Positions 26,748 through 60,756 of a stretch of 64,000 bases of DNA are shown here, piece by piece (position 1 is the first letter of the stretch; every line of letters starts with the position of its first letter). Source of the stretch: Oopsacas minuta (lineage: Eukaryota > Animalia > Porifera); assembly GCA_024704765.1 (NCBI GenBank), contig JAKMXF010000055.1, positions 64,255 to 128,254 of the forward strand, read 5' to 3'. The notes under the pieces are model-generated. The model saw only the letters and a list, made by a program, of their open reading frames with translations. It had not been told where the DNA came from and did no database searches. A program made the position numbers and the translations under genes.

Positions 26748-27047
26748 TAGTGTAATATTAGTAATCTCTTTTAATTACATTATGTTGTAAGGGAATAATG
26801 ATATGATCCTCCCTTTATCATATATCGTGTCAGGTATTTGGGCAGTGATTGTTTGTTGTTAAGCAGCTAGAGACATAAGTGTCTCTTTAGCAAAAGTATT
26901 GCTTGTTCGGAAATCTACTGAGTGTGATATCGTCCCGATTAAAGTTTAGATCAGTTACTTCACTTGTGGAGTTTTGAGGAACACATTAATACCTTCAAAG
27001 TCAGTTGATATCTTCTCCAGAACTGAATATATTTCCCCTCAAGTTTA

Positions 27048-35442: not shown

Positions 35443-38400
35443 CTGAAAATAAATATTTTAACTAGAATATTAGCAGAATAATTAATTTAGTAAATTATGA
35501 ATTCAAACGTGACGTAACGAATCAAATACACTGAAACCTTCACAAACGGGGCATATGGAAACGGAATAGCACTTTTCGCCGTCTCTGGCACTCGTTTGTC
35601 TTAGGTTACACTGTATTTTAAATCTCAATGTTGTCCGAAATATCTTAAAAATTGAGTTGACTGTGAAACTGGTAACAGCTGTGAGCTATAAATATGATAT
35701 GTGTATGGAAATTCAATCAACTTGAGTTAATTTCAAATTTCAAAGCCAAATCTTGGCTCATCTCTGTGAAAAGGTGACGAAATGTTCTCCCTATGGTATA
35801 CATTGATTCATTCAATGATGAATTGAAGAAGTTGAGAGGCAAAACGGACGTGAATCATCACTCACATATAAAGCAGTCTCAACTGGACCTTTGGTATATA
35901 TTTCATACATTATCTTATTGATACCACTGAGTGAGTAAGCACCATATACAGTATAGCACAACTCTGGATTAACATAGCTAGACGAAGGACACTCCTTATT
36001 TCAGAGATAGCATTCTCTGGCAGACCTAGAGCTACCGCTATCATATGCATAGCAATCCCCTGTTACTGTTCCTGTAGACTTCAAGTAGACAGCAATTAGT
36101 CAGGTTTGCGTTGCATGTTGCACTGTATAGTTAGTAATTCAATCAAACATACTGTGATTAAGTCACCAATTCAAAATGCACTAATTCTATGATTCTCTGA
36201 AGCTTTGCGTTCTTTTGCAATAAACTACACTCCAAATATTTAATAAACAGAACTTACCTCTACTAGAACTAGCACAGGATACCAGCTGTTAAGGTGATAG
36301 CCTCGGCAGCCGGAATACCTCCTACGAATATCGTACAAATATAGACAAAATATTTGTTGTTGATATTCATGTCGCGGCAGTTGACTTCACGTATTAATTG
36401 AGTTATTCATTCTAGGTTAATTTGACTTGATTAAGGATGTTGAGGAGTCAACAGCCCCAGAACAACCCCCTCCACCTATTTCACCACCTCAAAAAGTCTC
36501 CAGGAAGCGTAAACACACAGAATCCGAATGTAATACACCACCAACTTCACCAACAAAGGACTTCATGTATCTAAATAATTCCTCAAAGTCTCCTCATCCT
36601 GTAACGACCCCCAAAACACCCAAAACACCACAAACTCCTGTGACTCCCAATAATTCTACAGAATGTTGCAAAGAGTCCCATCTCAAGACCCCGCGTAAGC
36701 GTTTGATGTTATCGTCCCTTCCCCGTAAATGGAAAAACAATTGGAATTCAATCCTTCCTCTCCAGGGGCAACATCTACATCACTTTCGGAGTTATTCGAT
36801 TACGATGATTATCCCGTAAGAGATCCACAAAGGAAAAATATACTCCCCCTTCTAATCCCATCTTTAGTCCTAAATGTTCTCCCATCGCAGAAAGTGAATT
36901 TCTATCTCCATTCTTCTGCCAAGAAGAATTGGTATAAATAATAGTGTAATATTAGTAATCTCTTTTAATTACATTATGTTGTAAGGGAATAATGATATGA
37001 TCCTCCCTTTATCATATATCGTGTCAGGTATTTGGGCAGTGATTGTTTGTTGTTAAGCAGCTAGAGACATAAGTGTCTCTTTAGCAAAAGTATTGCTTGT
37101 CCGGACATCTACTGAGTGTGATATCGTCCCGATTAAAGTTTAGATCAGTTACTTCACTTGTGGAGTTTTGAGGAACACATTAATACCTTCAACGTCAGTT
37201 GATATCTTCTCCAGAACTGAATATATTTCCCCTCAAGTTTAATGATAGGTTTTCAGGAATTAACATACTGGTGGCGGCTGTGTGTTATTAAATCATTCAT
37301 TACTAAACGAAAACTATTCAAATCCAATGTAAGTCGCGGCCAACTCCGACAGTTTCCAAACTTGATGCAAAATCAGGTCTCAACCGAAGATCTTCGGAGA
37401 TAATGTGGTCATCTTGACAATCTTAAGGAAAAATTTTGTAGAACGTTTCGCCGACGTTATCAACATGGAGATACCGGGATGGATTATCCGTCCGTATTCG
37501 TGCGATTTGCAACAGATACCTATTGAACGAAAGGAATCACTGATTGATTTACGTAGCGATGATGTAGTGAAGTCTTCGTTCCCTGAACAATACTACAACA
37601 TTTTGTGGTGCAATATTGCTGATCAATACCCTGCTCTATGCGCCCGCACGAAAGTAATGATATTGTCATTTTCAACATCGTACCTCGTGGAGAAGGGTTT
37701 CTCAGCCGTTGTTGGACTTCTCACAAAGAAGAGGAATAGGCTGGAGATAACCAAACGTGGTGGTGACCTTCGGCTCTTCTTGACCAAATTCAGTCCCGAT
37801 CTGAAAAATCTTGTAACTGTGCACAGACCCAACCTTCACACTAAACTTATACAAATGAAAAATTTACATAAATTATGTCTTAGCATTTGGTAATATAATT
37901 AATATACAAACGAGATGGGACGAGGGGGAGGTGAGGGATGGCCCGATCATCGAAGGGGGCGACCGACAGAAAAAGGTTGAGAAACGCTGGTGTAGAGGGT
38001 TCATATATACACTATTATGTGAATAACACATTCAAGAAGAGTAATAAACTAATAATATATTGAATAATATTTGCATTATACTATACCTACAACAGATAAA
38101 CAGATATTCCGCTTATAATCAAGTAATATATTGGACTTCAAACTTTCTTAGAGAGTGGCTCTCAACGACAATATATACGGACGGTGACACATGGAGCGCT
38201 TTGCTGGTGAAGTGGGGGGGGTGCCACAAGCATGCTTCCACTTTCTGGAAGCGGAAAGGGTTGCCATCAGAGGGGGAGGAGGAGAATTGGCTGCCTCAGG
38301 GTTATTTGAAGTCGTTGGAATCGGAATCTAGTAAAAGAAAATAAAACAAAACTCGTCCATAATAGCATGTATACATTCACACATTCTGGTGTACTCACTC

Positions 38401-38753: not shown

Positions 38754-39570
38754 ATCGGGAAAATGGGAAAGTAGGAGAAGATGCCGCCTTAGTCTGGCCC
38801 AGCTCAGAAAACATTTATTTGCCCAAGAAGTATGGCTGCCAGTCTTGCTTCTTCACGTGTAATGACCTTTGTGTCATCACCGAACACGTGGAGAAGCATG
38901 TGCTGGCAGTCCGCCAACAGGCCCCCCAAGATCGCTATCATCCAGTATACGATCTGGCGGTGAAACACTACGATTAATGATCTCTCCAATCAAATTTTTT
39001 AATTACTAAGTAAATTTATGTTTTAGTCTAGTATTTTTATGTTTAGTGTAGATTTGTAGATTTTTGTAATATTAGTTCCAATATTTAATCAATAAAGTGA
39101 ATATAGTATTTCCCTCACTTTCAATTATATTGAGAATATTCCGTTGGGTTGGGCGCAACTGATACAATCTGAAGAATTGTTCGCCATTATCATGTACGCA
39201 TAGTCGTAATCACAAAGAATGGCAGTAGCACCACTTATTGAACGACATTCACATTATATAAGAATCAATATATTTATCATTCAGGGTATGAAACCTGATC
39301 CACTTCTCGAATAGTTGAATATCATGACCTACATTCAACCAAATTCCATTAGAGTTTGTTCCTTGGCATGCTTGGAATGTTTATTCTGATTTCAAATCGG
39401 TGTCATGAGAGTTTGTATTCATTCTTATAATTGAAATATGTATTCTAAGTTCACATCGGCGTTATGAGAGTTTGTTTATTCGTCCACGTGAAATACTTAT
39501 TTCCAACAACAAAGGGGTGTTGTTTCAATGTGTTCCCCTACCTTCTACTTTCTTATAGACACTACCAGAA
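38754..39570 (+). repeat. ~820-bp direct repeat with a terminal exon encoding a C2H2-like finger; copy at 41689-42513
   Basis: Near-identical copies; CQSCFFTC.DLCVITEHVEKH. Confidence 0.9.
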
Positions 39571-40921: not shown

Positions 40922-43094
40922 ACTTGGCATTTACCAAAATGTGACAATACTTCCCAAATTGGGTGTCTAAGATTACTGAAAATAATCACTCCTAAACCTT
41001 CAATAATTTCTACAAAATCCTTTACTTTATTATTTTTCTTCGATTTTCTCAAAACTATGTTTTCATGAATTTCATAATTTACTTTTCAGAATTACTTTAG
41101 CTTTGTTATTAAATGTAAATAAAATTTGTTTATTATTGACTTTTTGTGTTGTTTGGAATATTTTACGATTTTTATTAATTATCGCACGCTACTGATCCTT
41201 TACAATATATGAGTTTAAATCTCACGCAACAGATCCCCCCTCTGGTTATTTCTATCCACTAATACGAATTTTTGTATTTTTATTGGATTTTTTTGGCTAA
41301 TTATTATAATTATTCGTAAGCGTTAATAAATACATTAATTTAATTCAATGCTTGAGGATTAGAAGATGTAATTCATAGTTATTTACATTCTTCTATTTCA
41401 TTCATTGGCATATTCTGATATTCGAATGGATTGGATATTGATCTTACGTGTGGGCATACCTTGTGTCAGTCATCAATAGCCTCTTCCGGTGTTAGTCACA
41501 GTTTAGAACTATTGCTTTAGGTAATCAGTACTATTCAACTAGGTGTCTGGTTAACACCTATTCAAATCTGACAAGAGCATTCTAATATATTGGCTATACC
41601 CGGGCGCGTATAAATACAATTATTATAAACTGAAAGACAAATACAAATGCTAATCATTTTTATTTCTATAGTATTATTATTCCGAAAGATCGGGAAAATG
41701 GGGAAAGTAGGAGAAGAGGGTGATGCCGCCTTAGTCTGGCCCAGCTCAGAAAATATTTATTTGCCGAAGAAGTATGGCTGCCAGTCTTGCTTCTTCACGT
41801 GTGATGACCTTTGTGTCATCACCGAACACGTGGAGAAGCATGTGCTGGCAGTCCGCCAACAGGCCCCCCAAGATCGCTATCATCCAGTATACGATCTGGC
41901 GGTGAAACACTACGATTAATGATCTCTCCAATCAAATTTTTTAATTACTAAGTAAATTTATGTTTTAGTCTAGTATTTTTATGTTTAGTGTAGATTTGTA
42001 GATTTTTGTAATATTAGTTCCAATATTTAATCAATAAAGTGAATATAGTATTTCCCTCACTTTCAATTATATTGAGAATATTCCGTTGGGTTGGGCGCAA
42101 CTGATACAATCTGATGAATTGTTCGCCATTATCATGTACGCATAGTCGTAATCACAAAGAATGGCAGTAGCACCACTTATTGAACGACATTCACATTATA
42201 TAAGAATCAAATATATTTATCATTCAGGGTATGAAACCTGATCCACTTCTCGAATAGTTGAATATCATGACCTACATTCAACCAAATTCCATTACAGTTT
42301 GTTCCTTGGCATGCTTGAAATGTTTATTCTGATTTCAAATCGGTGTCATGAGAGTTTGTATTCATTCTTATAATTGAAATATGTATTCTAAGTTCACATC
42401 GGCGTTATGAGAGTTTGTTTATTCGTCCACGTGAAATACTTATTTCCAACATCAAAGGGGTGTTGTTTCAATGTGTTCCCCTACCTTCTACTTTCTTATA
42501 GACACTACCAGAATTTTCACCATCCAGTTTACACTCTAAATTTGCTGTCCAATTTTGTGTACTTTTTTTTCTTATTTTTCCCTAACTACATCATTGGTTC
42601 TAAGTATGTTGTTTTTGCATTTCCTGCAAGAGTTATTCTATATCTTTTGTGGTTGAATTTCTGATGTAAACTGAACTAGAACTATTCTGATCTTGTTTTT
42701 CAATCATGATAGAACATTTCTATAACCTCTAGTCTTACTTCTGTTAGAATCCTAGCATCCAATACCCAAGGTTGTCATTACTCTATTATCCATCACATTT
42801 TATTGTTCGTTGGCTTGGTTTTTCCTTCAGCCACAAACATTTTTCAATTCTCAAGGAATTGCCCTAATTGTGGCTGCTGATAACTGATTATTTGTACATG
42901 AATCAACTTAATAAATCCCTACCCCTAAACCAGGCACGTAGCTACGGGGGGGCAAGGGGGGCAGTCGCCCCCCCAGATAAATTTGGAAGTTTTCGTTTTT
43001 ATATACAATGTAGTTAGCTTATTAGTAATATTGCTCTATTAGCAACCAGCTTTCGGGTCCCAAACGGGATTATAATGTTAATTTCGTTGCCCTA

Positions 43095-43548
43095 TTAGNA
43101 TTTCGGAATTTCAAAGGAAATTGTCAATGATAGTGAAAGTTTTGTGAGATCTTCTACGCTATCAAATAGTAGTTCTGTGCATACAACCAAGCTCGGCTCA
43201 CGACTGTATGCCTCTCCAGAACAGCTGATCTCTAGTCACTACTCTTTTAAGACTGATATTTTCAGTTCTGCCCTAGTGTTCCTGGAGCTATTTTACCCAT
43301 TGACATCAGACAATGAAAAGTGTAATGTCTTCAGTGATGTTAGAGAGAGCAAGATTGCCACAGAATTTCTAGAAACCTTTCCATTTCAATCCTCTCTCAT
43401 TTTAGAAATGGTGAATTTGACTTGGCGTGATCGGCCGGATGCCGCCATGGTACTCAATAGATTATTAATAAACAGTAAGGATCCAGCTAAAGAAGTTTTA
43501 TTACTGAAGAAACGAATTGCAGAATTGGAAGCGCAACAACGATGTTGA
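43095..43548 (+). pseudogene. eIF2-alpha kinase-like C-lobe fragment
   Basis: GATTTCGGA (DFG) at ~43100, HTTKLGSRLYASPEQ, KTDIFS, LELFYP, DRPDA. Confidence 0.8.
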
Positions 43549-44378: not shown

Positions 44379-46239
44379 CAGCACGGTTACAGCTGCGTAC
44401 AGCCATTACCATAGAAACCATTGATAAATGTTTTTGGGTTGCATAAAATGCCCTATTAGCAAGGGTGGGGGATAAACCAATGATTGAATTCATAATATCA
44501 ATCCCACTTTTACCAATCCCAGCAAGCTTACCACCCAATACTTGTAACATATTGTGACCAAACATTATTTTATTATCTCCCTCAGTGGATTGGGATCTAG
44601 GGAGCGAATAAAATTCTGAAGAATGTCGACACTGTTCGCAGATAATATACTAATGCTTGACAACACCATTCGTATAACAGGATTGGTACAGTCCTAAATT
44701 TCCTTTCATACAATATTTACACATAGAAACTTCAGCTAAACTGTTTTCAAGTATACTTATGTCAATAAGAACTTGACCATCGACCTTTGACAAATTTCTA
44801 GTTACTGGTTTTTCCTTCCCAATCTGAAATATATCCATATCTTTATGCTGAATACCACCGATACAACTACGACTAAGTTTACTTTCAGAAGTAGTGAGAC
44901 AAACTTCAGAGATGGCTTCTAATTCACACAGCTCACTGTCAACATTATCATCCAACTTAGGGGACTTACTTCGTAGTTCCAACTCTTCAAAATCAGAAGT
45001 CAAACTTGATTGGCCGAAAGAGGTAGGAGGTCGGATAGTTTTCGGATTGAAACGATGAACAAAACTTTTCTTACTTTTTTCTTACCATAAACAAATCAAT
45101 TTGGAGGAATATAAGCAAAATTTGAATCTGTTGCAGTAAATTGTGCAATAGACGAAGAAGGTTGTACAAAATCAAAATTCTTAGGAACAGTATTGACGAA
45201 CAATGAATCATCATTCTTATTTCCGTCACCCTTTGGACCCGGGTTTAGTTCTACACACCCAATTACAAGTAACATTGAGATCACACAAGCAAGAAGAGCT
45301 ATGCCTGACGCAATTTCTAGTTGAAAGTGCTGGGAGAAGAAGAACATTATTCTCTTTGAATTGAATAACCCAATTTTAGCTCTCCAGAGCTCCAAAGCGA
45401 TCATTGATAGAGAAAAAATGACAATAAATATGCTAAAGGTTTGAAGAGAAGGGATTGGTAAGAATAATTGCAAACACAAATGGAATATAGGGATCAATAT
45501 AAATTTCGCGAATAAAAAAGATAACTATGAAACCCAGCAGGGTAAAGCGAGTTTGTTAATGACTAATAAGTAGGATACGGTACATTAAATTTAGGTGCTG
45601 GCCCTAGAGTTTTATAAGGTTTTTTCCTCCATCTGAATAGACTCTCCCTTGTCCAGCCGCATTTACTATCGCTTACTCTGTAGTTCCAGGAAGGATAATG
45701 AAAATGTACAAATTCTTCCTCTGAACTAGGAAGCTCTGGTAGTGACTCTGAGGATTCTGTAACCGTAAAATCCTCCAGCTTCATCCTTTTCGCTGGAGTC
45801 TCTTCAGTTTTCTCCAATCCCCATTTGCGGGTTGTATATGTACATCTTGAGGCTCTCCCTCTGTTTTCAGGTGGGAGATAGCCTGGTGGAGACGTTTGGG
45901 ATTTTGAAAATTCTCGAGACATTCTTATATATTCTATTGGAACATGTGCAAAATTATATCAGCATTGGGGTATATCGAATACTTCAGTCAAATTTCATAA
46001 TCAGACAATCAAATTGTGACACGTGTTGAGATGCGTAATTATTTGTGAGATATGGAAATATTTTAAAGAAGTCATCAGAATATATAACGGCAAAATGCGA
46101 AAAATATTTGAGATATTAATTCAAAACAGCCCAGAAATCTTGGAAAACTTCCTAAGAACCCAAGAATCCAATAAAACAGAAAATATTAGAATTTCAAAAA
46201 TTTCTGAAAATTATGCATATTATATAGGATACTTCCCCC
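44379..46239 (-). mobile_element. 5' part of a TTAA-targeting DNA transposon (Kolobok-like by inference)
   Basis: Terminus GGGGGAAGTATCC (minus strand) next to TTAA at 46240-46243; degraded transposase N-half (QVLIDISIL...CKYC...G; AGIGKSGI...IIGL). Confidence 0.75.
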
Positions 46240-46243
46240 TTAA

Positions 46244-46445
46244 ATAGACGTGAATTCAATGCTCTTGATTTGATATAATTGACAATTTTAACAGCATCAT
46301 CAAATACCATGTGTAATTCTGGGCTCATTTTCTTAGTTGCCAAGGCTTGTTTATGAATCATGCAATGTTGCCATTTTAAATTTGGATTTACTGACTTAAG
46401 GTGAGCAATAAGACCATTTGTGTGTCCTGTTATTGAGGGATCATT
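46244..46445 (-). mobile_element. hAT (ZBED5-type) transposase fragment upstream of the TTAA insertion site
   Basis: SITGHTNGL...QHCMIHKQAL...VKIVNYIKSRALNSRLF. Confidence 0.85.
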
Positions 46446-46606
46446 TGGATTTAGCATATATGGAATTTATCATAATTCATACATACATACTAAGACTATC
46501 GAACATTTACTAATCAATTGAATAACATACCTATGTTGAAAACAAATTATCGTATAAAGGTAACAACCTAATAGTAATTGCAATAGAGTTAAGGTAAATA
46601 CTTGCT

Positions 46607-46720
46607 TATTTATAGTTGAGTGAGTAAGAAGAGTAGATGTGCCTATTGTATTATTCTAAAGTTGTGACTATGGATTAAGTGAAGTGAGTAGTGGAAATTC
46701 TAGAATATTCCAGAATGTTC
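46607..46720 (-). promoter_or_regulatory. Putative heat-shock promoter in the element's 3' region: five-unit HSE plus TATA box
   Basis: TTCtaGAAtaTTCcaGAAtgTTC at 46698-46720; TATAAATA on the minus strand at 46614-46607; CT-A-TT initiator-like site 30 nt downstream (46584); AG|GTATGT donor at 46531|46530. Confidence 0.65.
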
Positions 46721-46821
46721 TTTTTGTCTAAAAATAGAACTCCTTCTAATAATAGTGATATACGGCAGTTTTGACCTATATACAGCCTGCCAAAGGGCTT
46801 AGAAATCTGTTCGTCATTCTT

Positions 46822-49239
46822 CTATAATAGTTCTGTGACTTTGTCTTCTTCTACTTGTGTGTGAAGGTCCATGATTTCGTCATGAAGACGCTGTATCTCT
46901 GTATTGGACTGTTCTCGATGCTCCGTTTGGAGTAGTTGTATGTCTACTGTGGTGGAGCACATACTGGAGGGAATATTTGTGAAGATAGCTGGGTCTCCAG
47001 CTGGTAGCCAGCTTTTTCTATAACTGGGCAAGATCTGGTAGTCAAATAGCCAGGCGGCTATTGACATTATATTACCAGTGAAGAGGGGATCTTGAGCCTC
47101 TAGTTCCTCTATAGAGGGTTCCTCCATTAAGGTAGGAAGGTAACAACTCTTCTCGTTTAATATAGTAGAAAGGGGAGAAGCTAGAAGTAAATTGCTGCTA
47201 GTGCCTTGTACTGGGGCCCCCACTCTGAGGGGGTGCTCTATGTCATGATGTGAGCCAGATCCGCCGACTGGTCCTGTGCCTCTAAATTGGGTCGTAATGA
47301 GATCATGCCAGGACATGTTTATAGGCATGATGTTGAACCTGGAGTTGGCCTGGAACCAATCTGGTCCATTGGGATTGCTTCCCCAGCTGTCGACACTGAT
47401 GTCGCTATGTAGAGCGGAGTGGTCTGAGTCGGGTAATGAGTGGTCCGGACTTGGTGGCATGATAGTGGTGTCTCCTTGATTGTGAAGTGGGACTTCGTGG
47501 CCGATGTTGGAAGGTATATATGTAAGTGTCCAGGTTGGACTTGGCCTTATGGTTGGTCGGTCCCCGATGACGTCATGCATCAGGACCTGGTTAATATGTA
47601 GAAGTTCCGAGGAGTTTAGTGTTCCAGCCCAGAGATCTTTATATGGCGAGTGGTGACTGTGGATTTTACGCCATGTTTTGGACTGGCGGAGCCAGTACCC
47701 GAATTGGTTCTTTAAGAACATGTGGCCAATTGGGTCTCTAGGGTCGAAACCTTTGGCGTAGTGTATTTTGTCCAGGATTAGATCGTGAATCTCTGGAGGG
47801 TAGCCTCTTGCTGGTAGAGATTTTGTGAAGCGTTGCCATACTTCCAGGAATAGGATATTGTTAGACGTAAATATGATGAATCTAATCACCATGATAATGA
47901 GATATCCAAAGTGAAGTCTTGGACTTATCGCATCATAGAGGGGACTAAATAGATTAACCCAGGTGGGTTTTATGTGCACTCTATATTGGCCGGTATGGTT
48001 TATTTCAAAGCCTAGCCAGGCTGCATAGTTATCTGTGCCGGCGTGTTGGATGGTGATTAGCTGTCCCTCTCTCTTGTAGCTTTCCTGTAGTGAGTTGATG
48101 ACTATGTTGGTGTCGTGTGTAGGTGGTATAATCACAAGGATGTCATCGAGATATCTCCCGTGCCACACGTCAGGGTGTCTTTTACGGAATTCTAGGTCCA
48201 ACATAAAAAGCGTGAAGTCCGCTAGAAATGGCGCTGCTGCGCTTCCTTGAGATAGGCCACTCACTTGTTTGTATACTATCTTGTTGACCTGTACGTATGT
48301 GTGTTCTAATAAGTATAAGGATCGCGCCCATACGTTCATGTAGACAGGTAGGAGTTGTGCTGGTACGTATTCAAAGAAATATTTAAATGTTCTATGGACC
48401 ATATTGTGCTTTATGGAAGGATAGCAACCCTCTACATCTAATTCTACTAGGGAGGGGGGCTTTCCATAGTACTGTAGCATACTATCAATGGTGCGTGAAG
48501 CTTGGTCCAGTCCTACGTACTCATATTCAGCATGGATTTCATGGAATCTGAAGAGAGTAGTCAATTCTTTTAAGAAGGAATAGCCAAAGAAGGATATAAA
48601 CTTTGCTGAGGCCTCTAGGTATGAGAATCCCTGTACAAGAATTCTTCCGGGTACTGGGATGCGATTCTTGTGTATTTTAGGCATCATATAAATCTTGGAT
48701 GCGTTGATTTTGTCATAAGAGGATGGATTTGTAACTACTTGATATTTTGATGGATCGTTGATCACCAAACCTCTTTGCTGTTGTAACCATTGTTTGCTGT
48801 GAATACACAATCCCATGCCCTTGTCAGTTTTCCTTATATGCGGGCCTCGCCTTCTTCTTGCATAATAAAATAGCTGTGTTAGTCCCACTGTGAGTGATGG
48901 TGGGAGGAGTTTTGAGCGAGTGGGGAGACTGTTTCTACTTACGTCAATATGCGCGTGGGATCCTAACCACAATAATTGAAGATATGTATCGTTAGGACAG
49001 AGTTGTTCGAAATCCCGATTTCTGTATTCATCCAGGTGTTTGCTGGTATAGTCGAGAGCGACCTCTAGACCCATCTCTCTCACTGCGGTTGGTGTTGCAG
49101 TGTACCATCGGCCTTGGAGAAAGAGTGTGCACATAGTTGACCAGGTTTTGAGCTGTGCCCCGAGGAGGGGTGTGTCCTCCTCGGGGCTAAAAACAAGAGG
49201 CTCTTCTTCTAACTGCGAGACTTGAATAGATCCGGACAT
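46822..49239 (-). CDS. Penelope-type reverse transcriptase, 805 aa, no GIY-YIG domain, ~300-aa unknown C-terminal extension
   Basis: KTDKG, YMMPKIHK..PGRILV, LDVEGCYPSI, YKQVSGLSQGSAAAPFLAD, RYLDD, WLGFEI, RGYP thumb. Confidence 0.9.
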   Translation of the reverse strand: MSGSIQVSQLEEEPLVFSPEEDTPLLGAQLKTWSTMCTLFLQGRWYTATPTAVREMGLEVALDYTSKHLDEYRNRDFEQLCPNDTYLQLLWLGSHAHIDVSRNSLPTRSKLLPPSLTVGLTQLFYYARRRRGPHIRKTDKGMGLCIHSKQWLQQQRGLVINDPSKYQVVTNPSSYDKINASKIYMMPKIHKNRIPVPGRILVQGFSYLEASAKFISFFGYSFLKELTTLFRFHEIHAEYEYVGLDQASRTIDSMLQYYGKPPSLVELDVEGCYPSIKHNMVHRTFKYFFEYVPAQLLPVYMNVWARSLYLLEHTYVQVNKIVYKQVSGLSQGSAAAPFLADFTLFMLDLEFRKRHPDVWHGRYLDDILVIIPPTHDTNIVINSLQESYKREGQLITIQHAGTDNYAAWLGFEINHTGQYRVHIKPTWVNLFSPLYDAISPRLHFGYLIIMVIRFIIFTSNNILFLEVWQRFTKSLPARGYPPEIHDLILDKIHYAKGFDPRDPIGHMFLKNQFGYWLRQSKTWRKIHSHHSPYKDLWAGTLNSSELLHINQVLMHDVIGDRPTIRPSPTWTLTYIPSNIGHEVPLHNQGDTTIMPPSPDHSLPDSDHSALHSDISVDSWGSNPNGPDWFQANSRFNIMPINMSWHDLITTQFRGTGPVGGSGSHHDIEHPLRVGAPVQGTSSNLLLASPLSTILNEKSCYLPTLMEEPSIEELEAQDPLFTGNIMSIAAWLFDYQILPSYRKSWLPAGDPAIFTNIPSSMCSTTVDIQLLQTEHREQSNTEIQRLHDEIMDLHTQVEEDKVTELL

Positions 49240-49253
49240 AGACAGCTCGACGT

Positions 49254-51977
49254 CTATGTCCGGCGACCTTTTGGCTGTTTAGTATTAGCAGAGTTAGGAT
49301 ATAGTTGGTGAGTGCAGAATTGTCTTCTGTGGCCGTATCTTCCACATCCGTTGCACTTTATACTTGGTCTGCCACAAGCTGTGGAGACATGGCCAGGCCT
49401 CTGGCAATTGTGACAGATTAGGGGGTTACGACCCCTGATTGTTTGTGCTCTGTCGAGTTTAGGAGAGTAACTTCTACTTCTGCTCTTAGACCTGAATCTG
49501 GTGGGAGCTCTAATATTGGCTCTGAGGTTGTAAGGTGAACGGCTCCTAGTTTGTGATGGAGTAGGGCTTCTTCCTCTGGCTGGTGACTTTGTTCTAGATC
49601 TTGATCTTCCTTGTTGGTGTCGGACTATATCGTTGGTAGTCCAGTTACTGCCATAGGAGTTGTTAGATGATCTGCTTCGTGACCTAGTGTCACGCCATCT
49701 ATTGTTTCTTCTTCTGTTTCCTCTAGTAAATGAGCTTCTAGAGGTGGAGTTGGATCTCCTTGATCTATTACTTCTAGAGCTGGATCTAGAGAATCTTGAG
49801 GGAGATCGGCCTGATCTGCTAGAGGTGGTGGACCAGGAGGATGAGGTAGATGAGGACCTGCTGGACCTGGATGATCTAGAGGATCTTGAGGAGGCTCTAG
49901 AGTTGGATCTGTAGCCTCTTCTTCCTGGGAGCCTAGATATAGATGGAGATCTGGAGCGAGATCTGCTCCGTTGTCTTGTTCTCCTTGATTTTCTCTGAGT
50001 TGAATTTCTATTATCTCTGCCAGTACTCTTTGGTCTCCGGAAGGTTGTAGAGTCTCTTCTTCGGGAGTTACGTCCAGGGACTGCCTCAGCGTTGTTGGGA
50101 TTAGTGAGGACAGCTGGCTCGAAGACCTTTCCGTCTTGGCTGACGATGTTGAGGTCAGCATCATGATAAAGGTAGGTATGCCTACTTTCACTGAGTTTCT
50201 TGGCATATCTTTGCTGTAGTCGACACTCTCCGTTCAGGTGTACTACTACTCCAGGCATCTTGGTGACTGTAAGGCCGCTAGGATCTGCGTCAGAGATCTC
50301 GTAGTACTTCCAGCTGTGGAGGTAACAGGGGCCGTACTTACAGTGTATATTTCGATGGTCGTTGCCATCGAAATGCCGGTGGTATTGGCAGGTTTTGTCT
50401 CGGTTTCCTAATAAGATGTTGACATCTGCGAAGATGTAAGCTGCTTTTCTGCGCTCATCTTCTTTAAGGGCCTTTGCCATATAGGCCCTTTCCCACTGCT
50501 CCGTAGCTTTCTCTTGTACTGTTACCAGAGCATTGTGTATATCCTGGTAGACAAATAGAATTATCCCCCAGTCTTTTATTCTCAGCGCACTCCCATCTCT
50601 CATTTTTACATCTTCTGAAGAGATTCTGAGTACGTCTATGGCGTCTCTTCCTAGCAACCAGCTCTGTTGGCTTACTGGTAGAAAGCGGAAGGTGCTGCAT
50701 CTTATCTTGTCTGTGACCAGTCGTAGAGCTTTTGGAATGTTGTTTCTGATTTCCCCGGTGATAGTTTCTTTTAAGACGATATTGTGTGCTACCATATCTC
50801 GTAGCTTCGTCATTATCCTCTTGGTTGTGGAGTTGGCTAAGATGTCTCCATCTTCCATTATGCTAATGTTCTCCACATGGTCTGTTAGCATGAAGGTGTT
50901 GATAATTTCTTCTGCTCCGGGATAGTACTCGACTGTGAGTGAGGTGTCTTCCGGTAGGGCATTTAACTCTTCAAAGATGGTCTTGAAGTAGTTTTTCTGG
51001 ATTGATGTTATTAGGTTGTTAAGCTGAGACGAGAGGACAATAAGATGGGAGGTTTCGTTCTGAATCATTGATATTGTGTTGTCCAGCAGCTTGGCTGCGA
51101 CCTCCTTCTTAAATTCGTCTCGCTGACGGGTGGCATGATGTCTAGCGAGGACTTCTTTCTCTGCGTCTTTCAGCCAAGAGGTAGGTATTATAGATCGGAG
51201 GTTTCTGTATTCCTCCTCATCTAGATTTGGGTCGATTCCGACCTGGGTCACCCAGGCTTCGACGTACTTTCGGGACTTTTCCATCCTGTCGAGCCTGTGT
51301 CCTAGAGAGTATAATTGTGTATACTTCTTCTGCAGTTCTGTGGTCTTTCTCTTGAGGAAGGCGTTGGTGAATTTCCTAGTGTGGTTTTTGAGAAAGGATA
51401 TTAAGGTTTGCTTCTTGTGTGATCCTGACGGTCGGAGTCTCAGATTGTCTTGGACGATCTTTCTTAAGAAGCCGGTGTCAAAACCGTATCGTCTATTATC
51501 CTCATGAAGAGAGGAATATTTATTTACTCCCAGTTCCCGTATGTCAGGACGGGATTCAGCAGCTGGGTGTACATTTAATTGTACTGTCTTTGACTTCATT
51601 ATCCCAGGCTTGGTAGGGACTGGGTTCATTCCTGCAGCAATGTCTTCTAGTAGAGCAGCCAGTTCGTCATCTAGTTTTCCGGATGCTCTGTACATCTCTA
51701 TGGTGTCCGCTATGTGAGGCTTCTTGGGGATGAATGGCGCGGCATCGCTATCCAACTTTGATGTGGGGAGCGCATTCATCCTGAAGCGGTCTTCTTCTAT
51801 GAGTGCAGACAGCTGGGCTGTGTCTGCAATGTGCGTGACTTTTCTCGCACGGGGTTCTTCTGTCGATGAGGATGGGACAGACATCTCATCGGGTGACTTA
51901 GTTCGCACGCTCGACATGGAGGGTGCATCTGGAGTGAGTCCATCTGGTTTGGAATAGTGAGCGAGGAAATGTCCCAA
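49254..51977 (-). CDS. Gag-like nucleic-acid-binding ORF1: coiled coil, Cys/His cluster, RS domain, two CCHC zinc knuckles
   Basis: CHNCQRPGHVSTAC and CNGCGRYGHRRQFC; long RS/SR tract; the track start is TTG, the first ATG is at 51917, and the frame is open up to 52133. Confidence 0.85.
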   Translation of the reverse strand: MGHFLAHYSKPDGLTPDAPSMSSVRTKSPDEMSVPSSSTEEPRARKVTHIADTAQLSALIEEDRFRMNALPTSKLDSDAAPFIPKKPHIADTIEMYRASGKLDDELAALLEDIAAGMNPVPTKPGIMKSKTVQLNVHPAAESRPDIRELGVNKYSSLHEDNRRYGFDTGFLRKIVQDNLRLRPSGSHKKQTLISFLKNHTRKFTNAFLKRKTTELQKKYTQLYSLGHRLDRMEKSRKYVEAWVTQVGIDPNLDEEEYRNLRSIIPTSWLKDAEKEVLARHHATRQRDEFKKEVAAKLLDNTISMIQNETSHLIVLSSQLNNLITSIQKNYFKTIFEELNALPEDTSLTVEYYPGAEEIINTFMLTDHVENISIMEDGDILANSTTKRIMTKLRDMVAHNIVLKETITGEIRNNIPKALRLVTDKIRCSTFRFLPVSQQSWLLGRDAIDVLRISSEDVKMRDGSALRIKDWGIILFVYQDIHNALVTVQEKATEQWERAYMAKALKEDERRKAAYIFADVNILLGNRDKTCQYHRHFDGNDHRNIHCKYGPCYLHSWKYYEISDADPSGLTVTKMPGVVVHLNGECRLQQRYAKKLSESRHTYLYHDADLNIVSQDGKVFEPAVLTNPNNAEAVPGRNSRRRDSTTFRRPKSTGRDNRNSTQRKSRRTRQRSRSRSRSPSISRLPGRRGYRSNSRASSRSSRSSRSSRSSSTSSSWSTTSSRSGRSPSRFSRSSSRSNRSRRSNSTSRSSFTRGNRRRNNRWRDTRSRSRSSNNSYGSNWTTNDIVRHQQGRSRSRTKSPARGRSPTPSQTRSRSPYNLRANIRAPTRFRSKSRSRSYSPKLDRAQTIRGRNPLICHNCQRPGHVSTACGRPSIKCNGCGRYGHRRQFCTHQLYPNSANTKQPKGRRT

Positions 51978-52549
51978 TCTGGCGGCTGAGATGTTGAATC
52001 CAGTGAGGAAGGTAAGAGGGGCTTCTGTGACAACATCTCGGTCTTTGCCTTTTGAGGTAGTATAGCTGAAACCAATGCTGGCGTACCAGTACGGACATCT
52101 CCCGCATTGTCTGCAAAGTATTGCGAAGCTGATCTAGACGAGTTCCTAATATAGCGGACGATGAGTGCTCGTCTGGTGACATAAAAGAAATCGAGGAACT
52201 CCTTGTCGGTCCAATTAAGAGTGGAAATGATCCCGTCCAGGACGAAATCCTCTGTAGTAGGGTGTATTCCTCCCATGTTGAGTCCTTTGGCTCCGAGTCT
52301 TGCGAAGTCTGTTCCTTCTCCGACCCATACTCCTCTTCCATACATGCCAATGCCTCCCGAAATTGCACTGCCAGGAGGGTATATAAGCTCCTCATCATCA
52401 GTTTGTATAAGATCTGGGGGTCTTGTAACTGGTATGCCATCAAGAGAGGGAGGGGGATTTTCACCTGTAAATATTCTAAGATGTGGTCTACGTGGTGGAA
52501 TAATATCATCAGTAGACACAGAAATGATATCGGCTTCGTTAGTCGCCAT
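51797..52549 (-). CDS. ORF0 of the retroelement, 250 aa, overlapping ORF1
   Basis: ATG in a strong context (A at -3, G at +4) 6 nt inside the 5' repeat; no known motif. Confidence 0.55.
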   Translation of the reverse strand: MATNEADIISVSTDDIIPPRRPHLRIFTGENPPPSLDGIPVTRPPDLIQTDDEELIYPPGSAISGGIGMYGRGVWVGEGTDFARLGAKGLNMGGIHPTTEDFVLDGIISTLNWTDKEFLDFFYVTRRALIVRYIRNSSRSASQYFADNAGDVRTGTPALVSAILPQKAKTEMLSQKPLLPSSLDSTSQPPDWDISSLTIPNQMDSLQMHPPCRACELSHPMRCLSHPHRQKNPVREKSRTLQTQPSCLHS

Positions 52550-52599
52550 AATTTTCTATGTTGAAAACAAATTATCGTATAAAGGTAACAACATGTTGT

Positions 52600-53196
52600 C
52601 TAAAATAGATCTAATGGAACTGTCAACAGACCAAGCAAATTTTCTTTTAGTTTATTGCTAAGATTCGTTTCAGAAATTGACTGAGTTGCAAAAGGAGTAG
52701 TAATCCAAGTATTTGTCAAATCTCTTAGATCTATTTCAGAAAAATACTTCAGAAAAGTATTCGCAAGTATTGTTAGGTGATTGCTAATTATTACCATCAC
52801 TCTCCCTGTGAGAACTACATTTTCAATGATAAGATTGCTGAGCGAATCAAAAGTGGTGATATCTCCTTTTTCAACTTGAGTAACCCCCTAATACAATACT
52901 TTCTTGTAAAAGCCTTTCACTTTGTCATGTGCCTGAAAAATATTAATATCAAATCCTTGCAACTGAAGATTTAGCTCGTGTATTTTACTGAATACGTCTG
53001 TAAGATAAGCTAATTGACAAACCCAGTCTTCGTCCAAAAATGAACTTTCAAATCAGATTTCATATCTGAGAGAAAAGTACATACTTCGTGTCTCATTTCA
53101 AAAAGTCTCGTCAAGACTCGTCCTCTCGACAACCACCTGACCTCAGTATGCAACAATGATTGCGTGTGGTTTGCCCCCATTTCTTCACACATTATT
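52600..53196 (-). mobile_element. hAT transposase fragment downstream of the TTAA insertion site
   Basis: KIMCEEMG...HTEVRWLSRGRVLTRLFE...YFSE...WITTPF; joins 46244 in frame across a single TTAA (SRLFKIMCEEMG). Confidence 0.85.
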
Positions 53197-53200
53197 TTAA

Positions 53201-55600
53201 GGGGAAAGTATCCTGAAACAACCTTATAGTGAAAGTATTTGATAAATTTGGCCCAAATTTCTAGTAGGTTTCTGACCCCCTTCGATCCTTCCAAAAATGC
53301 ATTAATATTAGCAAGTATTAAAAATCTAAATTCCTATTTGAAATTTATGGATCAAATTTCTAGAAATAATTTAAAATTTTCAAAAGGCTAATTACATTCA
53401 ATAACTGTTTTAAAACGTTCAATACATTTACAAATAGCTTTTCTACTCACTCGATTTTCTATAAAACAACCAGGAAGTAATTTTGGATTTCCCAAGCTTT
53501 GGTTGAATTTACATGTGGGCATTAAAAATATTTTATTTAAATTATCGTATTTTTAGACTTTAAATCAAAGTTCGAAAGATTAGAAAAGTTACAAAACTGC
53601 CTAAGCTACCAGAATCCGTTTACAAATCAGTAATCGGTAATATATATTTAAAATTATGATTTTTAGACATGGAAATTTTTACATTCTGAGATAATCGCCC
53701 AGAAAGTAAGAAATTTACATAGAATGATGTTTTCAATAGTTTAAAGGCTGGAATATGCTAGTATACTAAGAATACAACTAAATACAATAATATATTACAA
53801 GAGAACACAACTATACTATCGTAAAAGATACATAAATAGGGTATATCTATGATCGCTGACACGTAGGACATATCCATAGCTCTTCCGCATTTACACACAA
53901 AACACTACCATAAATATTATTCAGACAGAAATTATGAAACCAGCTATTACACACATCAAAACAGGTCCAATCAAATACATCTATCTTAGCAACCTTTTTA
54001 CTATTAGATTTAGCACCACTGTTCTCATCACCACCACACAACATACAACAAACATCACTACTAACACTTACATGTGAATATGCACCACTCTTATATCCAT
54101 CACCTAATCTCTTCCTCCTGCGTTTGGATTGCTTTATTGACCATCTACGTTTCGTGTACTCTTTACCTTTCTTTAATTTGCTAAAATCTATTCTATCATT
54201 ATCAGACGAACTACAGAAGCGTATAAAGGATTGTGAAGGTTGCAATCCTAACTCCCTAACTAAATCTGTAATACCAGCAAAACCATCATTGTACTTAATG
54301 ACAGCGAGGCTTGATCCAAAATGCATCAGGTCCAGGTCAATTGCTCTTGTTTTAGGAATAAAAGACCAAATGACATTGTGCAAACTTTCATTCAAGTTTG
54401 ATGTCCTACCCGCCTTCACCTTATCTAAAAATGAAAGTGTCATATAGGGTCCTAGGATTTCAATGAGCCGGTCTTTGCATGATTGAGAGAGAGCTGTTGG
54501 ATGTGAAGGTATGGGATCTCCTAAGAATTTTGCTCTCCTATAGTGACACCAAGAGCTCTCACCTTCAGGACAAAACTGATGCATTTCGGAGCAATTCTCG
54601 TCTGTAGCTGCTAAATGGTAAACTATGGCCAATAATAAATCCCGAATTTCAGGTAATGTAGAAGTAGAATTAGATTTTATGGTATAACCATACAGGGAGG
54701 TGATTTTGTCAATAGTAGAGTCTGATAGTAATTCGATGTCAAAACTACTTTTATCTAAATCACTATCGTCCCATTTTTCCCTTACTAATTTAGAGTCACG
54801 AAACGTAAAAGGTCTATAAGCCTGCCTAATATGCTTCTTCGCTTTCTCAGTTTTAGCTACAGCCAACTCATGTAGCATCAATGTTTTTTGAGAAGCTATA
54901 AATTGCTTCTGTTTTTCCACCAAATGTATTTTGATACGTTTTTGCACGTGACTAAGGCATTCCTCACGTGAAATAACAACTCCATATTCACCATAAATAT
55001 CAATGTCGACCAAGATATTCATACTTTTGTCATCCCCATCCGCAACCACAGTAGAATATAATAATTTTTGGTCAATAGACTTACGAAAACAACAGGAGCT
55101 AACTTAGACTCTAAAGCCACGGAAGTATAATCCCCATATTCCTTTGCTTGGCATGTTTCCCGTGCTCGACTAGCCATAGGAAATAATCCTCCTTAGACAA
55201 CCTCTTGCTTTTAGAGCTTCTTGTTTTTCGACACAATATCAACAACCGTTGCAAGCAACTTCAAAGCTTAGTATTTAGCCGCTTTCTATGGAAATGGCTG
55301 CAGCAAAACAGTACCTCGCAAATCCGCCACCACCTTTCCCTGTCCTTTTTTGATAGGCACCATCATACGAAACTGCAACACTCAGAAATTCATCCCCTTG
55401 TTTTATGATACATGTTTCTCAACTTTTCAGCAGCACGGTTACAGCTGCGTACAGCCATTACCATAGAAACCATTGATAAATGTTTTTGGGTTGCATAAAA
55501 TGCCCTATTAGCAAGGGTGGGGGATAAACCAATGATTGAATTCATAATATCAATCCCACTTTTACCAATCCCAGCAAGCTTACCACCCAATACTTGTAAC
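53201..55600 (-). mobile_element. 3' part of the Kolobok-like transposon with catalytic region and PHD finger
   Basis: AVSYDGAYQKR, ADGDDKS, EECLSHVQKR, TSNLNESLHNVIW and a C-terminal PHD-like finger (ORF 53847-55049); terminus GGGGAAAGTATCC at 53201-53213 beside TTAA at 53197-53200. Confidence 0.8.
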
Positions 55601-56897
55601 TGTTGTTAATATTTTGAAGTTAATATTTCCTAAGGTGTTCGTACCTAATCACACAAGATTTATAAATTGAGTTACTGTACATGGAAAATATGTATTTATT
55701 TATTTATTACCCAACTTTGGCTGATTTAGATTGTACGTCTCGTTGAGAAGATTGATATTTCTAGCACACATATCTAATTCATGCAATCTTGCAATCAATA
55801 TTTCATCCAACTCTTGGTGAACTTTCTCCTCCTTCTCAGAAAGAGATTGTCGGATCTGATCAAATTTCCGATTCAAGTCAGCATGCTGACCCTTGATGAC
55901 TCTCCTGATTTTGTCCTTGGCTAGAAGAACCTCCTGGTTATTCGACCTCTCATGGATATTTCCATCAGAATATGCTGGAAGTTGACTCATATGTAAAGGC
56001 TAATAGTTCCAGAAATCAGTATATTAATATCTATTTGATTATTAATTCCTATTTATCATAGATGAAATTGTATAACTCTTGTTTTAGAATGAGAATAACA
56101 TTAAACAATTTGGAAATTCCTCCAAGACTATAATCAGTGAATGAATTGTTGATGGATTAGGAGTATAATGTCAGTTCATTAACATCATTACTTGCATAAT
56201 TAAGCCACTGTTATACAAGTTTGTTGCGTCACGCTTAAGTGGTCAATTGTGGCCGACACAATGAATATTCGAGTCAGAAAGTGTCAAAATTCTATGTATA
56301 AATGAATGATTAAGTCTTTTTCTACGCTATCGACAGCACCAATTGAGTTAATAGTGTCGTATTAACAAATTTTCAATATTCCTCTACTAGCCAAGTTACG
56401 TGTGTTAAATAAATCATATTGACTACCTCTAGTTGTAAGAGTATTCAATTCTTGCAGTCTAGCATTATAAGTTATTAAGAACATAATTATGGGAATAAGT
56501 CTCTAGTGATAAATACTAACTAGCAAGTTAACTCTATAACTAAAGGGGAAATACTCTTTCAATTGTTGCTTCTCCAACTTCCTACACTCACTGAGTGGAG
56601 GAAGAGTATTTTGGTAACTTTATATCATAGAGGCTAAGATATATTTCAATTTTGATCAGACTAATACTGTAACTAATATGTCACATCCCGGTAGCCCAGC
56701 GTATCCCGGTAAAATACTGCGTAGGAGTGGCTGTGACCAGCTGTTCTAGGGTAACGCAAAAATTTATTCAAGTCATATTATTGTATTATATAAAATGACT
56801 TGAATGAATATTTGCTGCTAGACTGCTGGATTTCGCACGGCGCGCGGACGTACATATCACATCGTCCATGCCATTAGGGCATCTCCCTATAGGAGCT

Positions 56898-59522: not shown

Positions 59523-60756
59523 ATACAATTTCTCTTCTAACAAACTTATATCTAAACCTCGCAATGAATATAGGAAAATAGAAATGGGATTTCCTCATCT
59601 AGCATAGAGGTCGTATTAAATATGACTTTAGTAGAAAGGACCCCTCTTTCCTTTCTCTCTCAGGAGAGCAGAGTTCTTCTCTTTCAATTCTCTCACTTCA
59701 TCTTCCCACTTATTCTTATCAGTCAATGCATCCTGTAGCTCTCCCGAAGCTGAGATATTGTCCTTGATAAGTTGGGCTACTACTTTCTTTAATGAGACAT
59801 TGTCTCTATTTACAATGCACTATTTCTATGATTCTCTGAAGCTTTGCGTTCTTTTGCAATAAACTACACTCCAAATATTTAATAAACAGAACTTACCTCT
59901 ACTAGAACTAGCACAAGATACCAGCTGTTGAGGTGATAGCCTCCGCAGCCGGAATACCTCCTACGAATATCGTACAAATATAGACAAAATATTTGTTGTT
60001 GATATTCATGTCGCGGCAGTTGACTTCACGTATTAATTGAGTTATTCATTCTAGGTTAATTTGACTTGATTAAGGATGTTGAGGAGTCAACAGCCCCAGA
60101 ACAACCCCCTCCACCTATTTCACAACCTCAAAAAGTCTCCAGGAAGCGTAAACACACAGAATCCGAATGTAATACACCACCAACTTCACCAACAAAGGAC
60201 TTCATGTATCTAAATAATTCCTCAAAGTCTCCTCATCCTGTAACGACCCCCAAAACACCCAAAACACCACAAACTCCTGTGACTCCCAATAATTCTACAG
60301 AATGTTGCAAAGAGTCCCATCTCAAGACCCCGCGTAAGCGTTTGATGCTATCGTCCCTTCCCCGTAAATGGAAAAACAATTGGAATTCAATCCTTCCTCT
60401 CCAGGGGCAACATCTACATCACTTTCGGAGTTATTCGATTACGATGATTATCTCGTAAGAGATCCACAAAGGAAAAATATACTCCCCCTTCTATCCCCAT
60501 CTTTAGTCCTAAATGTTCTCCCATCGCAGAAAGTGAATTTCTATCTCCATTCTTCTGCCAAGAAGAATTGGTATAAATAATAGTGTAATATTAGTAATCT
60601 CTTTTAGTTACATTTTTGTTGTAAGGGAATAATGATATGATCCTCCCTTTATCATACATCGTGTCAGGTATTTGGGCAGCGATTGTTTGTTGTTAAGCAG
60701 CTAGAGACATAAGTGTCTCTTTAGCAGAAGTATTGCTTGTTCGGACATCTACTGAG

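Follow-up and report, generated by a model that had tools for sequence, protein, structure and literature searches.

A stretch of 64,000 nucleotides from the sponge Oopsacas minuta (assembly GCA_024704765.1, contig JAKMXF010000055.1, positions 64,255 to 128,254 of the forward strand; hereafter, the window) raises the question of what kind of mobile element can combine a Penelope-like reverse transcriptase (RT) with a Gag-like protein and carry no recognizable nuclease. An earlier note on this DNA, made from the sequence alone, had described the block at 46531-52592 as an apparently intact, endonuclease-less (EN-less) Penelope-like element (PLE) with a Gag-like upstream open reading frame (ORF), and had not recognized this combination as a described family. 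The element consists of a three-ORF body with an RT of the PLE/telomerase type and a Gag-like ORF-B, and no nuclease domain was found in it. In our judgement, the locus as a whole is very probably best explained as a copy of an EN-less PLE lineage, so far encountered only in hexactinellids, that would express its RT through a frameshift between ORF-B and ORF-C and propagate through a cycle built around a leader exon.

The three ORFs (ORF-A, ORF-B and ORF-C; Table 1) lie on the minus strand, and ORF-B and ORF-C are the two longest ORFs of the window. With a G+C content of 0.40-0.47, against 0.31-0.39 in the surroundings, and a strong strand skew, the element stands apart from the adjoining DNA. 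ORF-A and ORF-B are in different frames, and the intactness of the coding block is therefore uncertain for that part. A perfect 37-nt direct repeat has its outer edges exactly at the limits given in the earlier note. Of these, the 5' end, defined by the outer edge of the leader copy, can be retained, whereas comparison with relatives moves the 3' end about 91 nt further out, to near 46440, because a partial version of the 3'-terminal motif of the relatives directly precedes the point at which hAT coding sequence resumes.

Table 1. Features of the Oopsacas minuta element in window coordinates (related loci and proteins are denoted by L and P numbers, respectively).
Feature	Position	Strand	Remarks
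Whole element	46440..52592	-	about 6.15 kb; 3' end approximate, +/- about 6 nt
5' leader copy	52556..52592	-	37 nt, putative exon 1; ends pyrimidine-rich plus AG, 6 nt before ORF-A start
ORF1 region	49254..52549	-	two overlapping frames, ORF-A and ORF-B
ORF-A	51797..52549	-	250 aa
ORF-B	49254..51977	-	907-aa open frame
RS-rich block of ORF-B	49458..50072	-	aa 636-840 (205 aa), 58% Arg+Ser; also in L001, P0166, P0167
Two CX2CX4HX4C zinc knuckles	49314..49415	-	ORF-B aa 855-868 and 875-888; both also in L001
Putative -1 frameshift signal	49232..49274	-	in-frame CCA_AAA 49268-49274, 4-5 nt spacer, 12-bp hairpin 49232-49263
ORF-C	46822..49239	-	805 aa; -1 relative to ORF-B
RT, N-terminal PLE motifs and thumb	47620..48861	-	ORF-C aa 127-540; DKG aa 139-141, PKIHK aa 187, YLDD aa 363
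Conserved C-terminal domain, function unknown	46825..47619	-	ORF-C aa 541-805; from comparison with relatives
3' UTR promoter	46576..46614	-	TATAAATA 46607-46614 (TATA), 21 nt, initiator-like TATTGCAATT 46576-46585
3' leader copy	46531..46567	-	37 nt, perfect direct repeat of 5' copy
Tail	46440..46530	-	opens with splice-donor-like GTATGT 46525-46530; ends in partial family 3'-terminal motif

The class of the element is indicated by the RT domain of ORF-C, which Pfam detects as RVT_1 (E 9e-10). A PDB profile search with this RT and its relatives matched the RTs of group II introns, retrons and telomerase (TERT), and did not match those of retroviruses. In the AlphaFold model of ORF-C, aa 130-540 are predicted with confidence; the 16 best fold matches of the model in the PDB are all telomerases, followed by group II, retron and DRT RTs, with R2 and HIV lower; the R2 RT ranks 32nd and 40th, behind all TERTs, and retroviral RTs fall below the TERT, group II and retron RTs. 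The protein search resolved two layers of relatives, a tight family at 50-75% identity and, across a gap, some 300 proteins at 22-30% identity, mostly 550-700 aa long. Among 73 distant RTs the DK dipeptide (at least 90%) and K.HK are invariant or nearly so, and hhalign aligned the sponge family with these RTs at a probability of 100% (E 1.3e-38) over aa 127-495, a stretch that spans the DKG region, RT motifs 1-7 and the thumb. The nearest detectable outgroup is made up of EN-less RTs of about 550-700 aa, at 20-28% identity, and includes proteins of the bdelloid rotifer Rotaria that were recovered by profile search within the EN-less distant group and that are likely Athena-type. A sister group proposed by neighbour joining was discarded as not credible, the outgroup distances being saturated. 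The DKG motif is kept across the sponge family, and its presence upstream of RT motif 1 is diagnostic of PLEs (Craig et al. 2021, PMC8557442). Hence, given the fold and profile matches and this diagnostic motif, the RT of ORF-C is on its motifs and predicted fold of the PLE type, as had been proposed.

The ORF upstream of the RT is Gag-like. ORF-B contains long helices (aa 192-245, 286-340 and 467-517), a Cys/His block, an Arg/Ser-rich (RS) block and two CCHC knuckles, the zf-CCHC match being sub-threshold in Pfam. The CCHC/RS composition described previously is thus confirmed, and the contrast drawn there with the coiled-coil upstream ORFs of other EN-less PLEs can be refined, since the long helices expected of their ORF1 are present in ORF-B too. 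The Cys/His block (aa ~500-625; window 49950-50470), with its invariant arrangement of Cys and His, is the most conserved part of the protein, identity even with L001 reaching 64%. It has no match in Pfam or in the PDB, nor has ORF-B in a PDB profile search, and we regard it as a candidate zinc-binding domain. ORF-A starts with MAT, as it does in all copies. According to their coordinates, ORF-B is in the -1 frame relative to ORF-A and overlaps it by 180 nt, and in a relative from Vazella the two parts form a single ORF. No canonical slippery heptamer occurs in the overlap, and the change of frame may reflect one mutation or a second programmed shift.

A hairpin marks the passage from ORF-B to ORF-C. 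It was aligned in six copies, in all of which the ORF-B stop codon sits in its 5' arm; the 3' arm contains the ORF-C ATG in the window copy. Across the alignment 91.7% of the cells are paired, with compensatory changes in six of the 12 pairs, and the covariation score was reached by none of 500 shuffles, while slid controls were only 21-39% paired. Every copy has an in-frame A_AAA, A_AAC or A_AAU about 5 nt upstream of the stem, which is part of a canonical heptamer in L015 (C_CCA_AAA) and L017 (G_GGA_AAC) and reads G_CCA_AAA in the window. In the two copies checked, those of the window and L001, the -1 frame opens just 2-3 codons ahead of the slippery site. There is thus strong comparative support for the prediction that ORF-C is made as a Gag-Pol-like B-C fusion via -1 ribosomal frameshifting. 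There is a precedent among PLEs, in which a frameshift with an accompanying pseudoknot may set ORF1 apart (Craig et al. 2021, PMC8557442).

The ends of the element bear on its proposed mode of propagation. The 37-nt repeat is the sole terminal redundancy of the window copy, and an independent copy with the same layout, L003, has a 43-nt leader repeat with one indel. In both, the 3' leader copy is preceded by a TATA box and, 21-22 nt on, by a TATCGCA-like initiator; a consensus splice donor follows it directly (GTATGT in the window, GTAAGA in L003), and the 5' leader copy ends in a pyrimidine run and AG located 4-6 nt before the ORF-A start codon. The TATA box, the 21-22 nt spacing and the TATCGCA-type motif are common to L003, L013/14, L015, L018 and L027. 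The full module of TATA, initiator, leader with a terminal pyrimidine-AG, and GT donor is found after the RT stop in seven of eight copies (window, L003, L001, L013/14, L015, L016/17 and L018), and the eighth, L027, has kept the TATA and initiator but not the donor. Moreover, the leaders of the window and L001 agree completely over their first 15 nt, despite an RT identity of only 59%.

The unspliced layout is seen in L018, from Vazella. Here the end of ORF-C is followed by a 3' untranslated region (UTR) with TATA and initiator, then by the leader, and then by a GTGAGT donor and a tail, some 107 nt long and closed by the terminal motif of the family. After 4 nt comes a second leader copy, which begins inside the initiator, and 2 nt later the ATG of the ORF-A+B homologue. 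If this donor were spliced to the AG at the end of the second leader copy, the result would be the very 5' ends that the window and L003 copies have, and the start of the second copy would mark the 5' end of the RNA at the initiator. Because the processed 5' ends would follow from the unspliced layout of L018, the 37-nt repeat can be read as exon 1 of a spliced, terminally redundant RNA. Strong comparative support therefore exists for a putative leader exon, acting as a minimal pseudo-long terminal repeat (pseudo-LTR), and neither a target duplication nor an LTR; the same holds for a predicted promoter in the 3' UTR, with transcription starting some 40-75 nt before the GT donor. A target-site duplication was ruled out by the conservation of the leader start between the window and L001, by the TATA, initiator and donor that flank the 3' copy in independent copies, and by the element-internal position of the repeat in L018. 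Insertion into a spliced-leader gene, in the style of SLACS and NeSL, was likewise ruled out, as the 5' flank and the post-tail sequence of L003 both belong to a Harbinger-type transposase gene.

The tail that follows the donor is also part of the element, since its terminal motif is common to L003, both L015 arms, L001, L013 and L018. The motif ends in 4-6 T and then (A)GC (L018 7925-7950, L013 ~2040-2060, L001 ~10590-10605, L015 8895-8920 and L003 10690-10717), and only its first part is kept in the window. No copy has a poly(A) tail. The motif, which loosely resembles an Sm site or an RNA polymerase III terminator, could serve in 3'-end formation or in recognition by the RT. In the 3' UTR of L001 (10378-10410), L002 (9890-9935), L018 (7717-7750) and L027 (10670-10710), a CCATGGTC(C) motif occurs twice after the RT stop and before the TATA box; the pair is absent from the window copy. 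No promoter was found upstream of the 5' leader in the window copy, nor in the solitary full-length L003, and for this reason the window copy is probably silent unless read through from outside.

These arrangements suggest a cycle in which transcription would start from the TATA and initiator in the 3' UTR of an upstream copy. In a head-to-tail arrangement, with either a truncated upstream copy serving as pseudo-LTR or a tandem, the transcript would read through the tail into the next unit, and an intron composed of the tail and the leader copy of that unit would be removed at the pyrimidine-AG with which the leader ends. Reverse transcription of the spliced, terminally redundant RNA would then yield copies with the order leader, ORFs, promoter, leader and tail. 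Translation of ORF-C as a B-C fusion would depend on the in-frame A_AAN site, the 5-nt spacer and the 12-bp hairpin that holds the ORF-B stop. Integration, the step most weakly inferred, might take place on 3'-OH ends supplied by pre-existing breaks or nicks or by a host nuclease; as no nuclease was found in the element, priming on DNA ends that it does not make is the likeliest model.

The same 3' module could be read instead as a small gene resembling those for spliced-leader (SL) RNAs, with its leader of about 40 nt trans-spliced to the acceptor just before ORF-A; a solitary copy, too, would then gain a defined 5' end when transcribed from outside. In favour of this reading, the module has its own TATA, initiator and donor and a tail of 90-150 nt that in several copies ends in a U-run motif loosely like an Sm site, and the solitary full-length copies (window and L003) indeed lack an upstream promoter. 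The window leader, at 37 nt, also has the length of the leaders of about 37 nt and many different sequences that are reported for a few percent of glass-sponge mRNAs (PMC10282587). Nonetheless, RNAs composed of leader and tail fold no better than shuffles (z ~0), no SL RNA family is matched in Rfam, a canonical Sm site is missing, and the cis arrangement of L018 explains the processed ends without trans-splicing. Furthermore, neither the rest of the window nor the scanned JGI metagenome contigs yielded the leader; nine matches in the latter, none with TATA or donor, were set aside as chance. We consequently hold an SL-RNA-like gene to be quite improbable. No literature match was found for the start of the leader. 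The converse notion, that some of what is taken for SL trans-splicing in glass sponges is cis or trans splicing from leader modules borne by retroelements, is unlikely as well. It starts from the layout of the module, which even in a solitary or truncated copy places at the 3' end a promoter, a first exon of about 40 nt and a splice donor that would fire outward. Were the notion true, this lineage would supply host genes with 5' exons, and the glass-sponge leaders themselves might come from it.

The preferred reading, a mobile EN-less PLE with a leader-exon cycle, is consistent with the state of its relatives. One is a protein fragment from Oopsacas minuta itself (P0011, 75% identity), and the transcriptome-derived ORF-A+B homologue P0168, EukProt EP00800 of Vazella pourtalesii, has an exact coding match on an ENA contig. 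The remaining close relatives are all found on long contigs of ENA metagenome assemblies, where they are surrounded by eukaryotic transposons (Harbinger, hAT, Tc1, P-element-like and Helitron). Comparison across multiple loci revealed truncated, inverted and tandem partial copies, as well as a shared EN-less C-terminus. Between the window and L001, ORF-C shows a non-synonymous divergence (dN) of 0.38 with saturated synonymous divergence (dS), both ORFs being intact, although the L001 element is 5'-truncated within ORF-B. Frames have changed at least once in ORF-C and at least twice in ORF-B of L003, and at least once in ORF-C of L002, which also bears an inverted duplication; ORF-B is in three pieces in L016/17, L015 consists of rearranged partial copies, and in L018 and L019 a homologue of ORF-B has no RT beside it. 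Partial copies stand head to head in L002, L015 and L016/17, and a truncated upstream copy directly precedes the unit in L018. The 12-member, near-identical cluster of P0169 is a truncated RT piece within a larger repeated segment and yielded no element ends.

The same set of copies bears on the proposal that ORF-B and ORF-C are domesticated host genes, derived from gag and RT, and no longer mobile. Domestication would account for the low copy number per assembly, for intact ORFs under purifying selection, for the transcription of the ORF1 homologue in Vazella and for the ORF-B homologues without adjoining RT. It does not accommodate copies in unrelated contexts and inside other transposons, the 5'-truncated, inverted and tandem partial copies, the terminal leader repeats or the frameshifts present in several copies, and we consider it very improbable.

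Several further observations were made on these loci. The head-to-head copies of L002 and L015 are separated by 100% identical inverted repeats (L002 2883-4224 and 6933-8274, 1342 nt; L015 6110-7665 and 9863-11418, 1556 nt), and a 29-nt perfect palindrome marks the head-to-head junction of L016 (3640-3700); the inverted structures of L002, L015 and L016 may be of PLE type or may be foldbacks of long-read assembly. In L027, a 5'-truncated RT copy is accompanied by an 867-aa piggyBac-type transposase on a contig (ctg47174_316x_c, 20532 bp, 316x coverage) that the assembler closed as a circle, and about 4 kb around the RT piece are 98% identical to L026; the contig may represent copies in tandem or extrachromosomal circular DNA. 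In L020-L023 (JGI metagenomes 3300056801/819/823/832), a 573-aa ORF1 with a likewise Arg/Ser-rich C-terminus is followed by P0041, a distantly related EN-less protein (652 aa, ~21% identity). The pattern of genes there recurs head to tail about every 6.9 kb, and contigs of 7.0-7.1 kb come from three samples.

Besides the RT, no domain exceeds threshold in the ORFs of the element in Pfam or NCBIfam, and searches of these databases (E<=1) and of the PDB detected no GIY-YIG, apurinic/apyrimidinic (AP) or restriction-like (REL) endonuclease, protease, RNase H, integrase or recombinase, in agreement with what had been noted from visible motifs. GIY-YIG in particular has no match in ORF-A, ORF-B or ORF-C. 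The 265-aa tail of ORF-C (aa 541-805) was modelled with low confidence, but it is 50-60% identical in every relative that reaches it and has sharply conserved short motifs and a terminal helix, with no nuclease signature; the protein search found no relatives of this tail outside the sponge family, and a PDB profile search gave no match. All relatives reaching the C-terminus (L001/P0002, P0162, P0005, P0006, P0015, P0019 and P0021) have the same EN-less tail, ending at the same helix. Since they do, and since ORF-B is without matches, the EN-less state appears to be a property of the lineage and not of one copy. That an ordinary EN-bearing PLE has lost its GIY-YIG domain in this copy alone finds some encouragement in the distant relatives P0128 and P0092, which carry the domain at the N- and C-terminus, respectively, and are the two that do so among the 73 distant RTs. 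This loss, which would have been betrayed by GIY-YIG in fuller copies elsewhere, is largely refuted and most improbable: the close relatives share the conserved EN-less tail, the exhaustive protein search returned no close relative of greater length, and neither upstream ORF matches GIY-YIG. The absence of the domain from every ORF and close relative thus excludes the EN+ clades of PLEs, but not the PLE class.

The setting of the element also agrees with its description as interstitial. No telomeric repeats occur in the 64-kb window, and L003 is inserted in a Harbinger-type transposase gene, the coding sequence of which goes on beyond the element. A hAT-like transposase is divided between the flanks of the window copy, its later, C-terminal part on the 5' side (~52600-53330) and the adjoining earlier part on the 3' side (~46240-46440). 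At the 3' junction the terminal motif of the element matches the target over 5-6 nt, which we conjecture might reflect microhomology priming. A target duplication of 14-18 bp in L003 was withdrawn, the supposed 3' copy being located within the conserved tail of the element. Both hAT pieces end at TTAA beside outward-facing inverted ends of the CCC/GGG type, similar to those of piggyBac-type elements. Direct repeats of 177 bp, 99% identical, bracket the region (44379-44555 and 55431-55606; spacing 11052), and the segment 44379-55606 has the appearance of an 11-kb unit that is tandem or circularly permuted. An integrated copy of a circular, terminally redundant, pararetrovirus-like replicon, which this permuted appearance, the terminal redundancy with TATA just upstream of the repeat, the Gag-like protein with CCHC and Arg/Ser-rich blocks and the relative on a circularized contig might suggest, is scarcely credible in view of a telomerase/PLE-like RT that is not retroviral, caulimoviral or hepadnaviral, of the absence of RNase H and protease, of 5'-truncated copies and the partial tandem with spliceable junction in L018, and of a redundancy that stops exactly at the splice donor in two independent copies.

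The window as a whole forms a nest of repeats. Three places, 25888-28138, 36086-38343 and 59808-64000, share pieces of about 1-2.3 kb at 89-98% identity, and an LTR-like pair of 820-bp direct repeats (38754-39570 and 41689-42513) is 98% identical at a distance of 2.9 kb. A plus-strand ORF at 43144-43548 resembles the C-terminal lobe of a protein kinase and is possibly a host exon beside the nest.

Several points weigh against a mobile EN-less PLE with frameshift and leader-exon cycle. Splicing, transcription start and frameshifting are all read from DNA, and the evidence of expression amounts to one transcriptome-derived Vazella protein. The slippery site forms a canonical heptamer in only two of six copies, and the step from ORF-A to ORF-B, which may be a single frameshift mutation, requires a change of frame with no recognized signal. 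Neighbour-joining distances from the sponge RT to every outgroup exceed 2 substitutions per site and the bootstrap failed. Structure prediction, successful for the telomerase-like RT core of ORF-C, was poor for its tail and for ORF-B, where a predicted local distance difference test (pLDDT) score of 42 is too low for a fold search, and either might conceal a novel or cryptic nuclease. No clear target-site duplication was found at either full-length copy (window and L003) and the window flanks are not collinear, so that the integration step rests on absence of evidence. Finally, most PLE clades have a hammerhead ribozyme and this element does not: as the earlier note had found by inspection, no hammerhead or other Rfam family is detected at E<=10 in 45800-53400, or at gathering score in the window and eight related loci. 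Hammerheads are also absent from Naiad and most Chlamys PLEs (PMC8557442).

Among known systems, the closest comparison is with Athena of bdelloid rotifers and Coprina of fungi, protists and plants. EN-less PLEs are the closest mobile relatives of telomerase, and earlier descriptions present them as telomere-bound in rotifers, fungi, plants and protists. The sponge element resembles Athena and Coprina in having a PLE-type RT without endonuclease, 2-3 ORFs and a unit of 4-6 kb, and, as in these two, its upstream ORF has long helices; in them, too, a frameshift can separate ORF1 (PMC8557442; PMC6431247). It differs from them in lacking a telomeric setting, a hammerhead and the reverse-complement telomeric repeats at the 3' end, in place of which six copies bear a different conserved motif. 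Moreover, its ORF1 terminates with an RS block plus two CCHC knuckles, its RT has a conserved C-terminal extension found only in the sponge family, and identity to the EN-less outgroup RTs, those of Rotaria included, is as low as stated above.

The Gag-like ORF invites comparison with elements of other classes. HeT-A and TART have a Gag-like ORF with CCHC knuckles, and their 3'-end promoter drives the downstream neighbour in head-to-tail arrays. The earlier note had likened the 3' promoter to theirs; the promoter is borne out by the module in seven copies, but the arrangement is typical of PLEs and not specific to HeT-A/TART, which have a non-LTR (jockey) RT in place of a PLE/TERT-like one, are confined to telomeres, are poly(A)-tailed and lack a 5'-UTR intron that regenerates a leader. 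Other hallmarks of non-LTR elements are equally missing from the sponge element, with no AP or REL domain, no 3' poly(A) and an RT fold that places R2 behind all TERTs. With retroviral and LTR gag-pol it shares a CCHC ORF upstream of an RT ORF in the -1 frame, together with slippery site, spacer and stem-loop. It has, in contrast, no protease, RNase H, integrase or LTR, the only redundancy being the 37-nt repeat, and its RT belongs to another clade. Hence, the likeness to gag-pol is one of function and not of descent.

EN-less PLE families arise inside EN+ clades. An upstream ORF with a gag-like zf-CCHC domain is described for the Chara braunii PLE Chlamys-2_cBra (PMC8557442), which itself belongs to a clade of the green lineage with N-terminal EN and has a canonical hammerhead. 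For both reasons, the pairing of this RT with a Gag-like ORF is unusual yet not unprecedented. More generally, each feature of the element has a precedent in PLEs: EN-less two-ORF organization in Athena and Coprina, a CCHC ORF in Chlamys-2_cBra, absence of a hammerhead in Naiad, and a pseudo-LTR promoter with intron in Penelope and Chlamys-3. The impression that the combination matched no described family stands in so far as our limited literature search found no description of this lineage, or of such a PLE architecture in sponges; what was not found described is the joint occurrence, in a sponge, of an interstitial, non-telomeric location, an RS and CCHC Gag with frameshift hairpin, and an RT tail peculiar to the lineage. 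The element is thus a new branch of the PLE class and not a new kind of element. An early-branching animal host, an interstitial site, the lack of both telomeric 3' repeats and a hammerhead, and a Gag-Pol-like frameshift organization with CCHC knuckles widen the known architecture and host range of PLEs, and sharpen the question of how a telomerase-like RT without nuclease finds DNA ends inside chromosomes.

For the leader module, the counterparts are Penelope of Drosophila virilis and Chlamys-3_cRei of Chlamydomonas, in which the transcription start site lies in the pseudo-LTR and a 5'-UTR intron spans the boundary between pseudo-LTR and body (PMC8557442). The sponge element, as read from its DNA, shares both traits, and like them it has 5'-truncated insertions and tandem and inverted partial copies. 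Theirs is a single ORF with a GIY-YIG endonuclease, whereas the full-length sponge copies correspond to the spliced form, with the pseudo-LTR reduced to a leader exon of 37-43 nt. The promoter-leader-donor module, present in both spliced and unspliced form, would accordingly provide a DNA-level example of a pseudo-LTR and intron logic for which Penelope and one Chlamydomonas element had been the only demonstrated cases, and supports an ancient origin of this logic within the PLEs.

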